A stretch of 61,680 nucleotides of DNA, filler included, from Choristocarpus tenellus KU-1152 (lineage: Eukaryota > Protista > Phaeophyceae): assembly GCA_964200185.2 (NCBI GenBank). It is 12 parts of 12 records of this genome, joined end to end, with 100 filler letters (N's around TTAATTAATTAA, not from the genome) between each part and the next. Parts side by side here need not be neighbours in the genome. Positions count along the whole stretch, not along the records: positions 3,665 to 7,171 come from CAXNAD020019562.1; 11 more parts are not named here. One strand, 5' to 3'. The notes beneath the pieces are model-generated. The model was given only the letters and a program-made list of their open reading frames with translations, was not told where the DNA came from and made no database searches. The position numbers and the translations under genes are program-made. Numbering within the stretch: position 1 is the stretch's first letter; each line of letters starts with the position of its first letter. Below are positions 1 to 14,300 of the stretch, piece after piece.

Positions 1-299
1 GTGTTGCGTTGTGCAGGTGTTTGAAGGGTCGTGGGGTGTGGGGGGGGGGGGGGGGGGGGGGTGTCATGCAAACACTCTTGACACATGATGAGCACTTCAA
101 ATTATAACTAACATTATGCTCATATGTGAAGGACACTAGTCCAGGCATGACCTCTCCCACTGACATCTGTTGGAACATGTTGGAGCATGTTGGAGCACCT
201 CAGTAAAAAAAATATAAAAAAGAGTGATAATGGGGTCGATGAACAGCATTAACAAAATATCGACCCTTATTTCAGGAACTTTTTTTTTCCTTGTTCATG

Positions 300-3664: not shown

Positions 3665-4136
3665 CAGATACTTTGAGGCAGGGGCCTGCCTTATTATTAT
3701 GTAATATGGTGTCTCACATTTTATCATGTGTTACGGAAAAAGCAAAGCAGTATCATAATGTACACAACACAGTATATGTACGTACTACTTCATATACAAG
3801 TGAGAGTTTGTTGTAGCATATTAAATAGTACGTACGTAGGGGGCGTCCTGGGAGAGGGGTTTCTCGGAATAACCATATTTTCGAACATGTGTTATACCGA
3901 TACGGGGATTACTGTGCCTCAACGGTCTATCCTCTGTCCTCTCTTCATTTGTGTGTGGCAATCACTTCGAACCCACCTCTCCTTTTTCCATCTACCAATT
4001 ACCAAGGGGAAGTGGGTCATGATGATCTAGGGGTGGTCATTTGAATCCCCCAGCGAATAGAAGAAGTTTTGAATATTGATCAACCGAAGTCAAGAGACTC
4101 AGTTCAGGGGTAGTACCTGGTGACTGTTCTATAGAG

Positions 4137-6907
4137 ATGGACCCCTCGTTGGTCATCTCCCTTGCTTACGCCGTCTCTCGCATCCCCGCTGAAGTAAAGG
4201 TAAATCAGGCACAATGTAACCTTCTTGTGGAGCGGGTGCTGATGCTTTCGAAGCATATGGAGAGGATGCAACAGGGGAGTCTTGACAAAAGGCTTGGGAC
4301 GGCACACCAGGTACGTTCGAGGGCTCATAAAGGGTGCAGTGATTGTAGGAGGAAGGAGTGGTAATCGAAGCCGAGGATTTCTCGCAACGATACGAACAGA
4401 CAAGCGACGATTTGAACACTCTATAACCTGGCATGGGACAAACCATTGACTGCTGACTCGGTCTCCAGGAAGCTCTAGTGGAAGTCCACGACCTACTCTG
4501 TGAGTGCCGAGACTTTATGCAGACTTTCATTGATTCCTCCTGGATGACAAAGGCGCTCTACCGCACGACGCACAATGAGAAGTTTGGCTCCTTGCACAGC
4601 AAAATCACCTACATGCTACAGGTACCAAGAACGTGTATGCCTGTTGAAAGAGATCTAGAAGGGAGGCTACTCTCAATCATGTTTCCCCGATTAATTCCAT
4701 TTAAGCGAATTGCTGAATCACAACATCTAATCTCCAGAGACCATTTAGCTTTATTTATGCGCATATAAGGACACTTAGGCACTTCGTCCTTTGGAATGCC
4801 AGGGATGAGATACACACCTCAAATTGACATGGAGGTTTTCAGGATCTGCTCCCATGATCACCCGTTACGACCTATCGACGTTTCTGTTTATCGATTGTCG
4901 GTCGGATACAGATGCTCCACATGGAGATCGACTATCAATCGCTGGCCACTAGAAGAATGCAGGCGGAAGCTGTCGACCTTGCTGACATGGAGAAGGAACT
5001 CCAGAAAATGGCTACAAATATGGAGGTGCAGGATGGAAAGGAACTCTCACCTGTGGGCCTCTTACATTCAACTATTGGGAGAACGGTGTTTGAGTGAAAT
5101 TTTCTGTACCATCAGTGCTTTTATCTCAGGGGAGGAGGAGGGAGTATATGGTCTTCTGTAGGCACGGGGGGAGGGGTGGTTTGTACGCGGATTGTCGTTA
5201 TTTTGTAAATGCGGTCAAATATACTGTTCTACAGGTTCGTAGGAATGGATGATCTCCATGCACATTAGTTCCTTCATTTGGAGGTAAAGACATTGTGGCA
5301 CTTGCCTGCTGATGTACATCACAATGAGTCCTAGCCTAGAATGAACGTTTCCTTCTATTACTCCTGAAATGAACAAGCCTAGTCGACCTAAAACACTACA
5401 CGATCCTCTAACCACTGCGAGCAGAAGCTGGAACACTCGGTGACGACCTTGACTGAGGAAGGGCACAAAAAGCATGTGGAGGTTATGTCTGCCCTTCAAA
5501 ACCTACGTATATATCGACGAACATTTGACCAAGAACAGCTTCAGGAGTGAGTGCAGGCAATATCATCATGTGTGCCTTCCCAAACCCTACTACTACTTCC
5601 TAATGCTTACCCTAATTCTAAGCCTATAATACAGCATCACATCCAAAGTTCCCCGAACAATAGCTGTGCTGATCGGCTTTGAGACTTCAGCGACTTTTTT
5701 TTCTGTTTTTAGTGGTGTGAAAAATGCATGGGATTGGACGGCAATCGCCTCCTTTTTTTTTGTCCTGATTGATTCCAAAACCTCATTTATACAAGTAGAG
5801 TTAACTTGCCATGTCATCCAATTTTTTCCGCCACACCCTCATCAAGCATCCGCCTTTGCATGTACCGTCAACACCATGTATCAGTACACAAGACTTACCC
5901 CTATGCCCAGAGCATTTCTTCCGTTCTCATCCCCCCTCCCCTACCCCACCACGGTCTACAACTCTACTGCACACACACACATATATATACATATTGTTTC
6001 CTCCTGCTCACCTCAATATGGTGCAAGGATTGCTGCAGCAGCTCGTGCCGGAGCAGTGGATGGTGCTTCTGCAACAGAGGGAGTGGTGGTGGGAGGGGTA
6101 GGAGGAGGGGGAAGGGGAGGGGGGACGTCAGGGGGTGAAGGTTCTTCCTCATGCGCAACACACAACTGGCAGAGGAGGGTGCTAGTTGCACCTCCATTGC
6201 ACAAACAGGTTGTGGTCAACAACGATAACAAGGAAAAAAATAGACTTTGCCACGATAGCAACGAGGCTTCGTTAGTATCACCACCATCAGAAACCGTGAC
6301 CAAGCCCTCCCACCACCCTGATGCGAGAGCAGCGCCTGGGATGCTTTGTGAAAACCCAGGTCCAGACCTGGCAGGGACGCAACTCTTGCAAGCTGTAACG
6401 GGAACGGATACGAGTGTTGGAACTGGTGTGGTTACTGTTGGCGGAGCAGGTACGCCTCCTTCTTCTGCCAGGCCAACAGAGGAGAACAGCGCTGCTACCC
6501 TTGATGGGAATGAACCTCATGATACTTCGGGAGGTGGAACAGGGACAAGGCGAGGATCAAGCGGTACGCCTTCTGGCCCATCGTGTCCTCGACGTCCTCC
6601 TCCCCCTCCCCCTCCTCCTTTGCCTATTCGACCGGGAAAACCCTTACTAGGGAAGAGTCGCGGGGCTGTGTTGAACGGCTCTGGGGCTGTGCTGAACGGC
6701 TCTGGGGCTGTGCAAAACAATGCTAGACAGAAGGTTTTGGAAAATATTCGTTCGTCCCCTGGTCTTAGGGGGCACAACAGACCCTACAGTCAGGGTATGA
6801 TCAAGATGAGGAGCGGGGGGGATTTGGTGGGTGGTGATGTGGGCGCTGTGCACCCTTACAGCAATTTGGGGGCTGGTGAAGGAGGGGCTAGGCGAGGAGA
6901 GTATGAG
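4137..6907 (+). CDS. MLKL-like N-terminal four-helix-bundle + brace protein, probably 3'-partial. Exons 4137-4310, 4469-4621, 4912-5025, probable microexons 5425-5439 and 5539-5546, then 6028-6907 (disordered, Gly/Pro-rich)
   Basis: GT-AG junctions are phase-compatible. The spliced N-terminus MDPSLVISLAYAVSRIPAEVKVNQAQCNLLVERVLMLSKHMERMQ...EALVEVHDLLCECRDFMQTFIDSSWMTKAL...EKFGSLHSKITYMLQMLHMEID...QAEAVDLADMEKEL aligns by eye with the MLKL N-terminal domain and brace helices. Confidence 0.75.
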
Positions 6908-7103
6908 GTGTGTGTATACGAACTAAGAGCTTAGTCTTGCGGTTGCCTACCTGACTGGGGAGGGGGGGGGAGGAAATAAGTTGTTAGGGTTAGGGTTAGG
7001 GTGACTATAGTGCCTTTCTTAATGATATGTGTAATAATACATGTACCAGTATACTTGAGTATGTAAATGACCCCAGAAAAACAACAGTAAGAATAGATGA
7101 ACT

Positions 7104-7171
<68 letters not shown>

Positions 7172-11300: not shown

Positions 11301-14300
11301 ATCCGGTTCGTGACAACACGTAATTCTGTAGAGGAATGCAAGAGATATCGTCCGATGTTGGCGGGCTGAATGCCCACAGAATGCATCCGTGCCAACCGCT
11401 AGGTCAGTCAATATAATAGGGTTAGGGTTAGGCGCTCTACTACAGTGCCGATGTCACTAAAAACCCAACCGAAATGAACAAGTTGGTTTGGTTTGGTGTA
11501 GTCCAGACTAAACCAAGCAACATCTTATTCTGTCTTGTCTGAGGTTCGAAGTATCTAATGTTTCGTTTTTTTCCTGGCTTGTTCATGAATTTAATGTATG
11601 GTTGTCCCAGCAGTCCCTGTTTCTATCACCTGCTTGAACTTAGAGAGGAAGGGCAAAGAGTGAGAGACCCTGTGTGATTCGAAGTCTTATAGCCTGAGAA
11701 CAAGACTGTTCCGCGAGGAGCGAGAGAATCTCAGATTCATGCACTTGACTGCAATATTAATACTAGCTGTGTTCGGTGTGAAGCAAGGTTTAGCTGATCA
11801 AAACACTTCTGCTGCGTGTTCCTTCTTAAGACTTGCTGCAGATGTAGCCCGGAAGGGACTTGACATTTACTCTCATGCTGGTGCCTCTGTTGACCGGCCA
11901 CCATCAGGTCCTGCATATTGTTCTAGAATCTCCCCCCCTCCCATACCTCTCTACCCTCAGCAGCCTTGTCATCCCAACATTGAACTTACTTCCCAAAAGG
12001 GTTTTCCACAACTACTTCAAGGCTCCTGTCAATAGGCCGTAAAAATGGTACTCTCAATGCTGCTATCCTTTAAAAAGTTTATTAGCCTGCCACCTCTGTT
12101 GCAGCCTTTCCTCCAACCCCCCCCCCCCCCCCCCCCCCCTCTCTTTCCCCCTCCCCTTCCCCCCCGCTCTTCCTCCTCCCCNNNNNNNNNNNNNNNNNNN
12201 NNNNNNNNNNNNNNNNNNNNNNNNNTTAATTAATTAANNNNNNNNNNNNNNNNNNNNNNNNNNNNNNNNNNNNNNNNNNNNACTCCCCAATGGGGCCTTT
12301 TGGGGTGGCCCCCCCCCCCCCCAGATACTTTGAGTCAACAGTATTGTTCCGGACTTGCTAAAATAATCACCTGCATACAGCAGATGTAGTTATTTCTTCT
12401 GACACTTTTTGATTGGGAGGAAACCCTGACAGTGCAGTCGACTACTTGAGACCTCTTCCTCTCCCTCGCACTACTCCTCAATATCGTAGCTTTGATGATT
12501 ATATTGTTGGAGCGAATCACGATCTCAACCAGTGCAAATACACATTTTATTATTGCAATAGTGACAGTATTGATACCACGTAGATCACAACAAAAAAGCA
12601 CTCACCTCTGAAAAACTGCACCTTCTCTACAATTGGCTGCTAGAAAATACCAGAATGTGCCCTCCCACTTATTTATTGCGTATGGAGTCTGCTGTTGCAT
12701 GTCATCATCTTGTGTAATCCCTTCAGTTACACAACAACCCAACAGTCATCTTCCTCAATTTAATACTTTAGTACAATTCAGCTCCACCTGTTGTGTGATA
12801 CATCTATCAACGAGATAAGATAAGCAGGTGCTGTTTGGAGTTAGAAATCTCTCACAGTCAACCAAACCTGTTCGACCACATGTGGTAAATGTTTCCTTGT
12901 GCATTACTAGGCATCAAGAGTTCTGCTACGGAGAATAATGTACTCCATATATAAAGTGGTAGTGAGTTCATGGGTGTTGCATATAGATCCTTGGCCACAG
13001 AAAAATAGAGAGCTTCGACACTCCCACCTCTCAAAACATGTGTATTTGCTCCTCCTAGAGGACAGCGTTTCACATCGCTCAATCTATTGTGTGCAGCAAC
13101 CCACAGACATGATTTGGAGTTACCATCATAATTATTTAAATCATCATCATCACTCAGTGCTTGAAGTGTATTGCATTTCATGGTAGCGTTCTGCGGAGCA
13201 TGTTGTACGTCATATTACGTAAAAAGGATGAAGTTTGTGAGGAGGCGAGAATACTACCCGCCAACTGAAGACACCATGGACTTCCTATTTCAACAGCATG
13301 TCACAAATAGTGAAACATAGATGGCCGTCTTTTGGGCAGGCTGCCGACAACATTCAGAATATATCCGTTTTAGACTAAGTGATGGACGACGGTGTGACTG
13401 GATGAAAGATATTGCTGACAGTTCAGGGCATGCTCAAAATGCTGTACTGTTAACCAAATTGACTCCTATATTTCACTGCCCACGAACTCTGTGTGTTCGT
13501 TTTGGCATCAGAAACGAGGAAAATAGTGGGTATTAGCCCATTAAGAGTAGTGTGGCCCTAGATAATGCCTTCTATAAAAACCCTAAAGAATCATATGCAC
13601 TAATGTGAACGTCAATATGTTAGGGGTACATTTTGCTTGGAAGATGCTGGCAACAACAGTGACTCTCTGTAATATAAAACAGGGCTCATGAAGAAATGTG
13701 ATAAAAAAAATCGGCATTCCGTCAAGCAATGATCTCCTCACTAAGGTGATAAACTCCCCTACTGAGATTAGTAGTGTCTATGAATTAACCTTACAGCACT
13801 CCTTCAAGTACCCCGTCTCATCACCATAGCTTGTTCAAGCAGGATTGAGGTCCTTGAGAACATTGCCCCCAAGCCTTTTAATGCCCCCATGGATTGTGCA
13901 CTTGGGTGCAGTGTCCATTATTGTCATATTTATCATACCACCACTAAAGTGGTATTCTGCTTGCTTAATCCAATACAGACAATGCAGGATCAGGTTGATA
14001 ATCTTGTCTACTCGCCTGCATCAGCTCGTCCCCCTTGACCACGAATGAAGGCCTATGAACCCCTTCCATTTGGCAAGCATCCTCACACTCTCCCATTTCC
14101 ATTGATACCTTGAGCATTATACTTGCTACTCCAACTACCATTATTCTCCCACTGGTGGTACAGTGCTGTGAGATGAGACCCAGTAGGGGAGCATGCCCTG
14201 ATCTCGGAACATCTACAGGTGCTGCGTAGGCACATGAGCTTCAAATGTGGATGGCCAAGTAGTCCTTCTCAATGTCTCCACCCCTCGCCTTTCCTGTTCG

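Follow-up and report, generated by a model that had tools for sequence, protein, structure and literature searches.

Does a brown alga encode a membrane executor of the MLKL type, and, if so, what module governs it? The question is raised by a gene on the + strand, at positions 4137–6907 of the window analyzed here (the whole stretch of 61,680 nt, made of joined records from Choristocarpus tenellus), in which an initial annotation had recognized by eye the N-terminal four-helix bundle and brace of MLKL and had anticipated a kinase or pseudokinase in the missing 3′ exons. The usable stretch is 3665–7171, a short eukaryotic contig of ~3.5 kb. This piece carries the 5′ portion of a nuclear gene that is expressed and that belongs to a family conserved across brown algae. 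The gene product begins (residues 1 to ~110) with what profile matches and a structural model very probably identify as an MLKL_N-type four-helix bundle. Beyond a coiled coil and a long linker, the orthologues have a PDZ domain followed by leucine-rich repeats (LRRs) where a kinase had been expected.

The gene model rests on a transcript. The stretch is present in three public runs from a single study. Run X1 has a genomic contig of 3855 nt that spans it unspliced. In run X3, a contig (record 16; 2180 nt, depth 46) begins at 3902, omits precisely the four introns, is continuous over 6028–6909, and exits the piece at the 6907 donor with ~500 nt remaining. Thus, the gene is transcribed, the exon model is right, the 5′ untranslated region (UTR) is at least 235 nt long, and downstream exons lie beyond the piece. 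There are five exons, separated by introns of 158, 290, 399, and 481 nt that are all GT..AG, and the ATG at 4137 is the first downstream of an in-frame stop at 4077–4079. The three phase-0 exons of the initial annotation (4137–4310, 4469–4621, and 4912–5025) are exact by translation and by the X3 joints, and the X3 contig shows that its long exon of low complexity, which ends GEYE at a GT donor (6907/6908), is real. The domain that it drew from those three exons, ~147 aa, is helical as described, but its extent has to be revised; exon 4 (5425–5546) had been missed, and the helical N-terminus is built from four exons and measures ~188 aa.

The N-terminus was already in the public record. Exon 1 alone, searched against 1.84 billion representative proteins, retrieved at 100% identity a protein of 211 aa (here P0001; NCBI CAM9951733.1, "unnamed protein product, partial [Choristocarpus tenellus]") that derives from a 3507-nt contig identical with the piece. 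P0001 consists of exons 1–4, the E of a split codon, and 23 residues from the start of exon 5. It ends at 6097, and the transcript carries exon 5 past that point to 6907. We searched the exons singly and analyzed the joined N-terminus through P0001. The features of the piece are these:

3902..4136, + strand: 5′ UTR (minimum extent), from the start of X3 record 16; contiguous with exon 1.
4019–4030, + strand: upstream open reading frame ATGATGATCTAG, three codons (ATG ATG ATC TAG), within the transcribed 5′ UTR.
4137..4310, + strand: exon 1 coding sequence, 58 aa, helices alpha1–alpha2; from translation and Pfam MLKL_N, and equal to P0001 residues 1–58.
4311..4468, + strand: intron 1, 158 nt, GT..AG; from the X3 joint and splice sites.
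4469..4621, + strand: exon 2, 51 aa, helices alpha3–alpha4 with the SSWMTKAL segment; from translation and Pfam MLKL_N.
4622..4911, + strand: intron 2, 290 nt, GT..AG; from the X3 joint and splice sites.
4912..5025, + strand: exon 3, 38 aa, acidic brace-like helix LHMEIDYQSL...QAEAVDLADMEKEL; from translation, charge, and the structural model.
5026..5424, + strand: intron 3, 399 nt, GT..AG; from the X3 joint and splice sites.
5425..5546, + strand: exon 4, 122 nt (40 codons + 2 nt), KLEHSVTT...QEQLQ; from translation and the X3 joint, and equal to P0001 residues 148–187. It ends in phase 2, and the codon split across intron 4 (GA, then G) encodes E.
5547..6027, + strand: intron 4, 481 nt, GTGAGT..AG; from the X3 joint and splice sites.
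6028..6907, + strand: exon 5, 293 codons, a Gly/Pro/Ala/Ser-rich linker that ends GEGGARRGEYE; from translation, X3 coverage, and composition.
6908..7171, + strand: start of intron 5, donor GTGTGT, cut at the contig end; from the departure of the X3 contig and the orthologous Discosporangium intron.

The case for the bundle begins with the exons taken separately. The Pfam MLKL_N profile (PF22215; length 142, gathering cut-off 27 bits) matches exon 1 alone at 22.2 bits (E = 1.1e-4, profile 4–46) and exon 2 alone at 12.2 bits (E = 0.13, profile 56–101), colinearly. Since each exon by itself falls in order on MLKL_N, the by-eye match exceeds chance. P0001 scores 44 bits (E = 2.1e-11; residues 6–113 on profile 4–110 of 142), and the complete Nemacystus models reach 46.5 bits (P0013) and 45.8 bits (P0015). 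Among the Pfam matches of P0001 at E ≤ 1, MLKL_N stands alone; RPW8 (PF05659), HeLo (PF14479) or HeLo-like, and MCAfunc families are not among them. A 15-row family profile searched against 177,635 Protein Data Bank (PDB) sequences placed mouse MLKL at the top (4btf, E = 1.3e-3) and N-terminal domains of human MLKL in the next five places (E = 0.03–0.05), in the same register as the alignment that the initial annotation had made by eye. In the language-model features of the Atlas, Nemacystus residues 1–195 scored 0.94, 0.92, and 0.91 with MLKL_N clusters (Basidiomycota, Oomycota, Streptophyta) and 0.86 with an RPW8.2 cluster; an oomycete MLKL_N cluster is thereby among the matches. Single exons carried less signal in the other searches: phmmer of exons 1 and 2 singly against PDB sequences returned nothing useful, and the Atlas features of exon 1 alone gave no score >0.79. 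An automated tag of the kind that the initial annotation had allowed for does exist, as PF22215 is precomputed on the Nemacystus protein. Within the literature library searched, nothing was found connecting MLKL, HeLo, or RPW8 with brown algae and nothing citing these accessions.

We also considered a loose likeness of the family N-terminus (MVD..S.VKLA..L; residues 1–20 of P0005, P0011, and P0015) to the MADA motif of plant coiled-coil (CC) NLRs, MADAxVSFxVxKLxxLLxxEx (10.1101/693291). The two are offset by 3 residues, and the likeness fades further in Choristocarpus (MDPSLVISLAYAV), so that it counts as no more than a lead.

Structure prediction points the same way. An AlphaFold2 model of P0001:1–190, built with the family alignment, has a predicted local distance difference test (pLDDT) score of 80.8 and shows the antiparallel four-helix bundle of the MLKL_N family. 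Its helices span 3–14 and 24–46 (both from exon 1), 55–80, and 83–88, and are followed by one long helix at 90–189. In Foldseek, the top probabilities went to the MLKL executioner domain (0.87) and the NRG1.1 CC-R domain (0.77). The initial annotation had suggested comparing such a model with the MLKL bundle, and VIA-align superposed it on MLKL entries 6zz1 and 6zvo with Z 9.7 and 9.3; NRG1.1 CC-R was best (Z 11.9, root-mean-square deviation 2.6 Å, 108 of 109 residues), with Rx CC at Z 10.4 and AtMLKL2 at Z 9.2. By shape, 7 of the 10 nearest family sets in the Atlas are plant MCAfunc, MLKL_N, or MLKL-kinase clusters or a fungal NLR cluster. An MLKL-type bundle with brace in an ochrophyte, as the initial annotation had it, is thus borne out by a Pfam match over cut-off, by MLKL as the top PDB match, by the NRG1.1/MLKL-like fold, and by the Atlas clusters. 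The kinship to RPW8 and HeLo that it also stated holds in part: it is visible only in fold and language-model features, and no Pfam profile match accompanies it. The hydrophobicity maximum (KD19 1.43) falls at alpha1 in two models and is nowhere exceeded, and the models examined by KD19 contain no hydrophobic membrane span.

The long helix that follows the bundle fits, by its sequence and in the model, a coiled-coil "brace." Exons 3 and 4, which encode it, are net acidic (−4 and −1) and keep a single heptad register that continues from alpha4 for ~80–86 residues and is identical in the two orthologues examined; within these exons, 62% of a/d positions are core hydrophobic, compared with 23% elsewhere. 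Of the 23 columns invariant in all six aligned family sequences, 15 fall in exon 3, which is modeled at a pLDDT of about 85–90. The linker amounts to ~290 Gly/Pro-rich residues in Choristocarpus and to ~125 disordered residues in the complete Nemacystus model, it is poorly conserved (22–29% identity in the family), and a word search with the exon-5 open reading frame (region 122–414) found no match. Within it, a 21-nt tandem repeat (6662–6713; 2.5 copies, 96% match) encodes GAVLNGS repeats, and a TCC/CCT run (6595–6619) encodes the poly-Pro tract PRRPPPPPPPPLP. Orthologues conserve neither of these, save for a PxRPxKP-like core. The end of exon 5, GEGGA[KR]RGEYE, is invariant in orthologues.

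What lies beyond GEYE can be read from those orthologues. In all six models that span the junction, GEYE is directly followed by VSFGEGQMG, and the sequence runs on through a PDZ domain to LRRs. The family alignment runs bundle, brace or coiled coil, linker, GEGGA[KR]RGEYEVSFGEGQMG..., PDZ, cap, LRRs, and tail. In Discosporangium, the corresponding exon ends ...GGARRGEYE, followed by gt, at L001:12306, and the next exon opens with VSFGEG at L001:13203 (intron 12307–13202). As this phase-0 intron follows GEYE, it is the same intron that cuts the piece at 6907. The GEYE that the initial annotation had taken for a kinase or pseudokinase lead-in is, by the orthologues and this Discosporangium junction, a PDZ lead-in instead; the piece itself holds only this lead-in, GEGGARRGEYE, and not the PDZ domain. 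We infer that the Choristocarpus gene also continues into PDZ, cap, LRRs, and tail, as judged from its relatives' sequences.

The downstream domains are seen in the orthologues. Pfam PDZ (PF00595) scores 23.5–29 bits, against a cut-off of 23.2, in the five scanned orthologue proteins that span the region. A profile of this region has 133 PDB matches at E ≤ 1, the best being syntenin-1 (1.6e-4), and 59 of the 60 matches listed are PDZ proteins or PDZ-bearing proteases, including DegQ/DegP, site-2 protease, PDLIM2, SNX27, and Scribble/LAP4. There are about 13–14 plant-type LRRs (LRR_1 and LRR_8, E = 1e-26 to 1e-39). An AlphaFold2 model of P0012:255–832, from a five-sequence alignment, gives a confident LRR solenoid (pLDDT >90) and a PDZ part below 45; the best matches of the LRR model are the plant receptor-kinase ectodomains ERL2, MIK2, FLS2, and RGFR1 (E = 1e-26 to 1e-23). 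Plant extracellular LRR N-terminal caps carry a cysteine pair. The cap that precedes the LRRs here (for example, about 440–545 in P0015), GVLLEIYAKASxS..PWVRSxGWD....WSGVRxGRxGKV, is similar to the plant LRR N-terminal cap but is without such a pair, which fits a cytosolic location. Pfam scans of P0002, P0011, P0012, P0013, P0014, and P0015 found no kinase family (Pkinase, PK_Tyr_Ser-Thr) and no NB-ARC, NACHT, or other P-loop family, and the orthologues have no signal peptide. Since the orthologue proteins carry neither a signal peptide nor a membrane span, and neither a kinase nor NB-ARC, they are cytosolic. Their C-terminus is conserved as KKKLS[E/A/G]CDVR[F/L]-COOH (P0002, P0011, P0012, P0014, and P0015), a -V-R-F/L-COOH tail that we take to fit a class II (hydrophobic-x-hydrophobic) PDZ ligand in a protein with a PDZ domain of its own. 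From these sequences, PDZ–tail autoinhibition or head-to-tail assembly is conceivable.

Choristocarpus and Discosporangium stand at the base of the Phaeophyceae in molecular phylogenies, and the family ranges from the early-branching Discosporangiales to the Ectocarpales. Outside Choristocarpus, the orthologues that run on past GEYE into PDZ represent nine species in six genera (Discosporangium, Ectocarpus, Pylaiella, Nemacystus, Scytosiphon, and Hapterophycus). The family members, gathered from the exon-1 search and from word searches, are Discosporangium mesarthrocarpum P0002 (828 aa, a 59% identical match), Ectocarpus sp. 6 (its cluster also contains E. fasciculatus and Ectocarpus sp. 4, 8, and 12), Ectocarpus siliculosus CBJ25910.1 (publicly named "Putative Leucine Rich Repeat Receptor"), Pylaiella littoralis, Nemacystus decipiens, Scytosiphon promiscuus, and Hapterophycus canaliculatus. 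Public gene models of the family are for the most part incomplete, and the bundle is hidden where exon 1 or 2 is skipped. The sole complete public model is Nemacystus g16407.t3 (P0015, 879 aa). Exon 2 (alpha3–alpha4) is skipped in P0002, P0011, and P0012 and is nevertheless present in Discosporangium DNA (L001:7140–7289, 64% identical); the E. siliculosus model P0014 is without exons 1 and 4. Such skipping probably explains why the bundle went unnoticed. Eight further exon-1-like fragments from Logan contigs (P0003–P0010; 37–44% identical, then reading through into the intron) share the pattern MVDVASIVKLA..KIPETVKINRGQCQLLVDRI..GHLERMQ..EKSHEV and are probably orthologues from other brown algae.

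What might such a protein do? By analogy with better-known bundles, it is likely a cytosolic sensor-executor or a membrane-signaling protein; a membrane-executor or cell-death role we infer from homology. The mechanism that we favor, to which we give about an even chance, is that of a four-helix-bundle membrane effector controlled by the PDZ–LRR half. In this mechanism, the PDZ–LRR half would serve as a sensing or regulatory module that keeps the protein inactive until the binding of a ligand or partner to it frees the heptad helix to oligomerize; the linker, long and flexible, and the coiled coil would together act as an oligomerization switch. The oligomerized bundles would then engage the membrane through the amphipathic alpha1, the most hydrophobic segment of the protein, and might open a cation-permeable channel or pore, as MLKL, RPW8-type, and CC-type NLR domains do. 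The outcome would be a Ca2+ or ion signal or cell death. Equivalently, the protein would be an MLKL whose pseudokinase switch has been swapped for PDZ–LRR, or a CC-NLR minus its nucleotide-binding domain. A more specific form, a NOD-less single-chain sensor-executor in which the LRRs control a coiled-coil-driven bundle channel and the PDZ domain may clamp the protein's own ...CDVRF tail, strikes us as rather unlikely in all its particulars.

Several observations weigh against a PDZ–LRR-controlled executor. The PDZ–LRR exons of Choristocarpus were not seen, and a word search for its C-terminal fragment found only the Scytosiphon and Hapterophycus orthologues. The Foldseek E-values are weak (~0.25), and unrelated four-helix bundles (Cbl TKB, IncA, and designed proteins) also reach Z 9–11 in VIA-align, so the VIA-align score alone does not discriminate. 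The two halves of the bundle carry net charges of +2 and −2 in Choristocarpus and −3 and −2 in Nemacystus; the bundle is therefore not basic, and acidic-lipid binding in the manner of MLKL is not obvious. Between Discosporangium and the Ectocarpales, the deepest split sampled, the LRRs (55–59%) and the PDZ domain (63–65%) are more conserved than exon 1 of the bundle (42–46%). The searches, none of which was a dedicated copy-number test, turned up no genome with a second copy. This LRR conservation and the lack of a second copy are unlike arms-race immune receptors and fit a conserved endogenous partner; they fit housekeeping signaling as well as a death role.

With no second copy, conserved LRR and PDZ regions, and a nonbasic bundle, a nonlethal membrane-signaling or scaffold role is a serious rival. 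The same protein would then be no killer at all: a conserved cytosolic scaffold or signaling protein whose PDZ domain and LRRs bind partners, as they do in polarity scaffolds that combine LRRs with PDZ, and whose bundle and coiled coil serve as a membrane or lipid anchor, an oligomerization module, or a nonlethal Ca2+-permeable channel. Plant MCA proteins, which have the related MCAfunc domain, form such a Ca2+-permeable channel. The MCAfunc clusters among the nearest Atlas shapes, the Scribble/LAP4 PDZ domains among the PDZ matches listed, the single orthologue seen per genome with no sign of expansion, and the expression of the gene in a seemingly ordinary culture transcriptome all speak for this role, as does the conservation across the deepest split. 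However, the sequence likeness is specific to MLKL_N, with RPW8, HeLo, and MCAfunc unlisted at E ≤ 1; the PDZ-before-LRR order and the plant-type LRRs are unlike LAP proteins; and the executors MLKL, NRG1, and ADR1 are also conserved and low-copy, so that conservation is no argument against an executor. We regard the scaffold role as possible, if somewhat doubtful.

Two other explanations fare far worse. The MLKL_N match could be convergent or due to chance, in an ordinary helical bundle or coiled coil that shares neither ancestry nor mechanism with MLKL, RPW8, or HeLo. Helical bundles do score middling against many unrelated folds, the Foldseek values are as weak as stated, and single exons matched nothing among PDB sequences. 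Yet the Pfam scores of two independent orthologues lie 17–19 bits over cut-off and are colinear on profile 3–115, the PDB profile search puts MLKL entries first in a consistent register, and the Atlas shape and feature searches both converge on MLKL_N, MCAfunc, and RPW8 clusters, which makes a chance match very improbable. Least credible of all is the full MLKL architecture, whose kinase or pseudokinase would be encoded downstream of ...GEYE by the missing 3′ exons. It was suggested by ..EYE, which looks like a kinase lead-in, and the 3′ exons of Choristocarpus were not recovered. Against this stand the six orthologue models that lead from GEYE into PDZ and LRRs, the intron position after GEYE kept in the closest relative, and the lack of a Pkinase or PK_Tyr_Ser-Thr match in the six models scanned with Pfam.

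The proposed executor controlled by a PDZ–LRR half is best appreciated beside the systems that it resembles. Like animal and plant MLKL, the brown-algal proteins begin with an N-terminal bundle over the MLKL_N threshold and continue into a brace-like helix, and MLKL N-terminal domains are their best PDB sequence matches and among their best structural matches. Unlike MLKL, the orthologues have no kinase or pseudokinase and carry PDZ and about 13–14 LRRs in its place; the brace in the P0001 model is one long heptad helix, where MLKL has two short ones, and nothing here implies activation by a RIPK3-like kinase. With CC-NLRs and RPW8-NLRs (NRG1.1, Rx, and ZAR1), they share an N-terminal bundle and C-terminal LRRs in one cytosolic protein, the LRRs being seen in orthologues only. 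They differ in having no central nucleotide-binding domain (NB-ARC, NOD, or STAND), where a coiled coil, disordered linker, and PDZ domain are found, in leaving Pfam RPW8 unmatched, and in LRRs that resemble receptor-kinase ectodomains and not those of NLRs. Fungal HeLo/HELL domains and the N-termini of fungal NLRs belong to the same structural class, and basidiomycete nSTAND1/NB-ARC/TPR and MLKL_N clusters are among the nearest Atlas neighbors of the bundle, but no amyloid motif partner, NOD-TPR/WD architecture, or Pfam HeLo match was seen in the brown-algal proteins.

A similar mixture of likeness and difference holds for proteins that combine or deploy LRRs in other ways. LAP scaffolds (Scribble and Erbin) also unite LRRs and PDZ in one cytosolic protein; in the brown-algal proteins, by contrast, PDZ precedes the LRRs, which are of plant type, and there is in addition an MLKL_N bundle, which LAP proteins are not known to carry. 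The brown-algal LRR-ROCO GTPases and NB-ARC-TPR proteins, candidate immune receptors, are likewise cytosolic, with plant-type LRRs. These families are expanded and exon-shuffled, whereas the bundle–PDZ–LRR family is conserved, shows no expansion, and has an MLKL/CC-R-like bundle. Lack of a kinase thus separates the family from MLKL, and lack of a NOD from NLRs; its domain order and LRR type set it apart from LAP scaffolds.

A few observations concern the end of the piece. Read-through from GEYE to the stop at 6934 (GEYEVCVYELRA, then the stop) was rejected as the main product, as the transcript contig departs at the 6907 donor. Two apparent joints (6119 to 6981 and 6123 to 6983) were rejected as splicing on account of their noncanonical ends, their 20-nt sides, and their location in G-rich (6091–6123) and TTAGGG (6983–7002) repeats, which are common to many unrelated contigs. 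The latter repeat is an interstitial telomere-type (TTAGGG)3 at 6983–7002, in the intron after GEYE; the orthologous Discosporangium intron carries TTAGGG x7 (L001, about 12650–12692), and many unrelated contigs of the same runs terminate in a TTAGGG repeat. The contig ends in 67 nt of poly-C (7105–7171), which may be real or an assembly or sequencing artifact, and the genomic contig of run X1 reaches ~448 nt past 7090. An Rfam scan of the piece matched no family.

The bundles of MLKL, NLRs, and fungal proteins are switched on in various ways: by a pseudokinase with RIPK3, by NOD oligomerization, and by amyloid templating. To these the brown-algal family adds a fourth kind of wiring, found in what is also a fourth multicellular lineage, in which bundle and coiled coil are joined to PDZ and receptor-type LRRs with no nucleotide-binding domain. 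It provides a concrete gene for research on brown-algal immunity and cell death, and Ectocarpus is genetically tractable. The survey of Zambounis et al. (2012) reported no Ectocarpus LRR protein with a plant-R-like TIR, nucleotide-binding site (NBS), or coiled-coil motif (PMC3341825), and the family revises the claim in that work that no Ectocarpus LRR protein has a CC-like module. If the proposed sensor-executor is true, such a module would exist in a lineage reported to be without any LRR protein with CC, TIR, or NBS, and it would represent an independent solution, in organisms with their own origin of multicellularity, to immune or stress-triggered ion flux and cell death.

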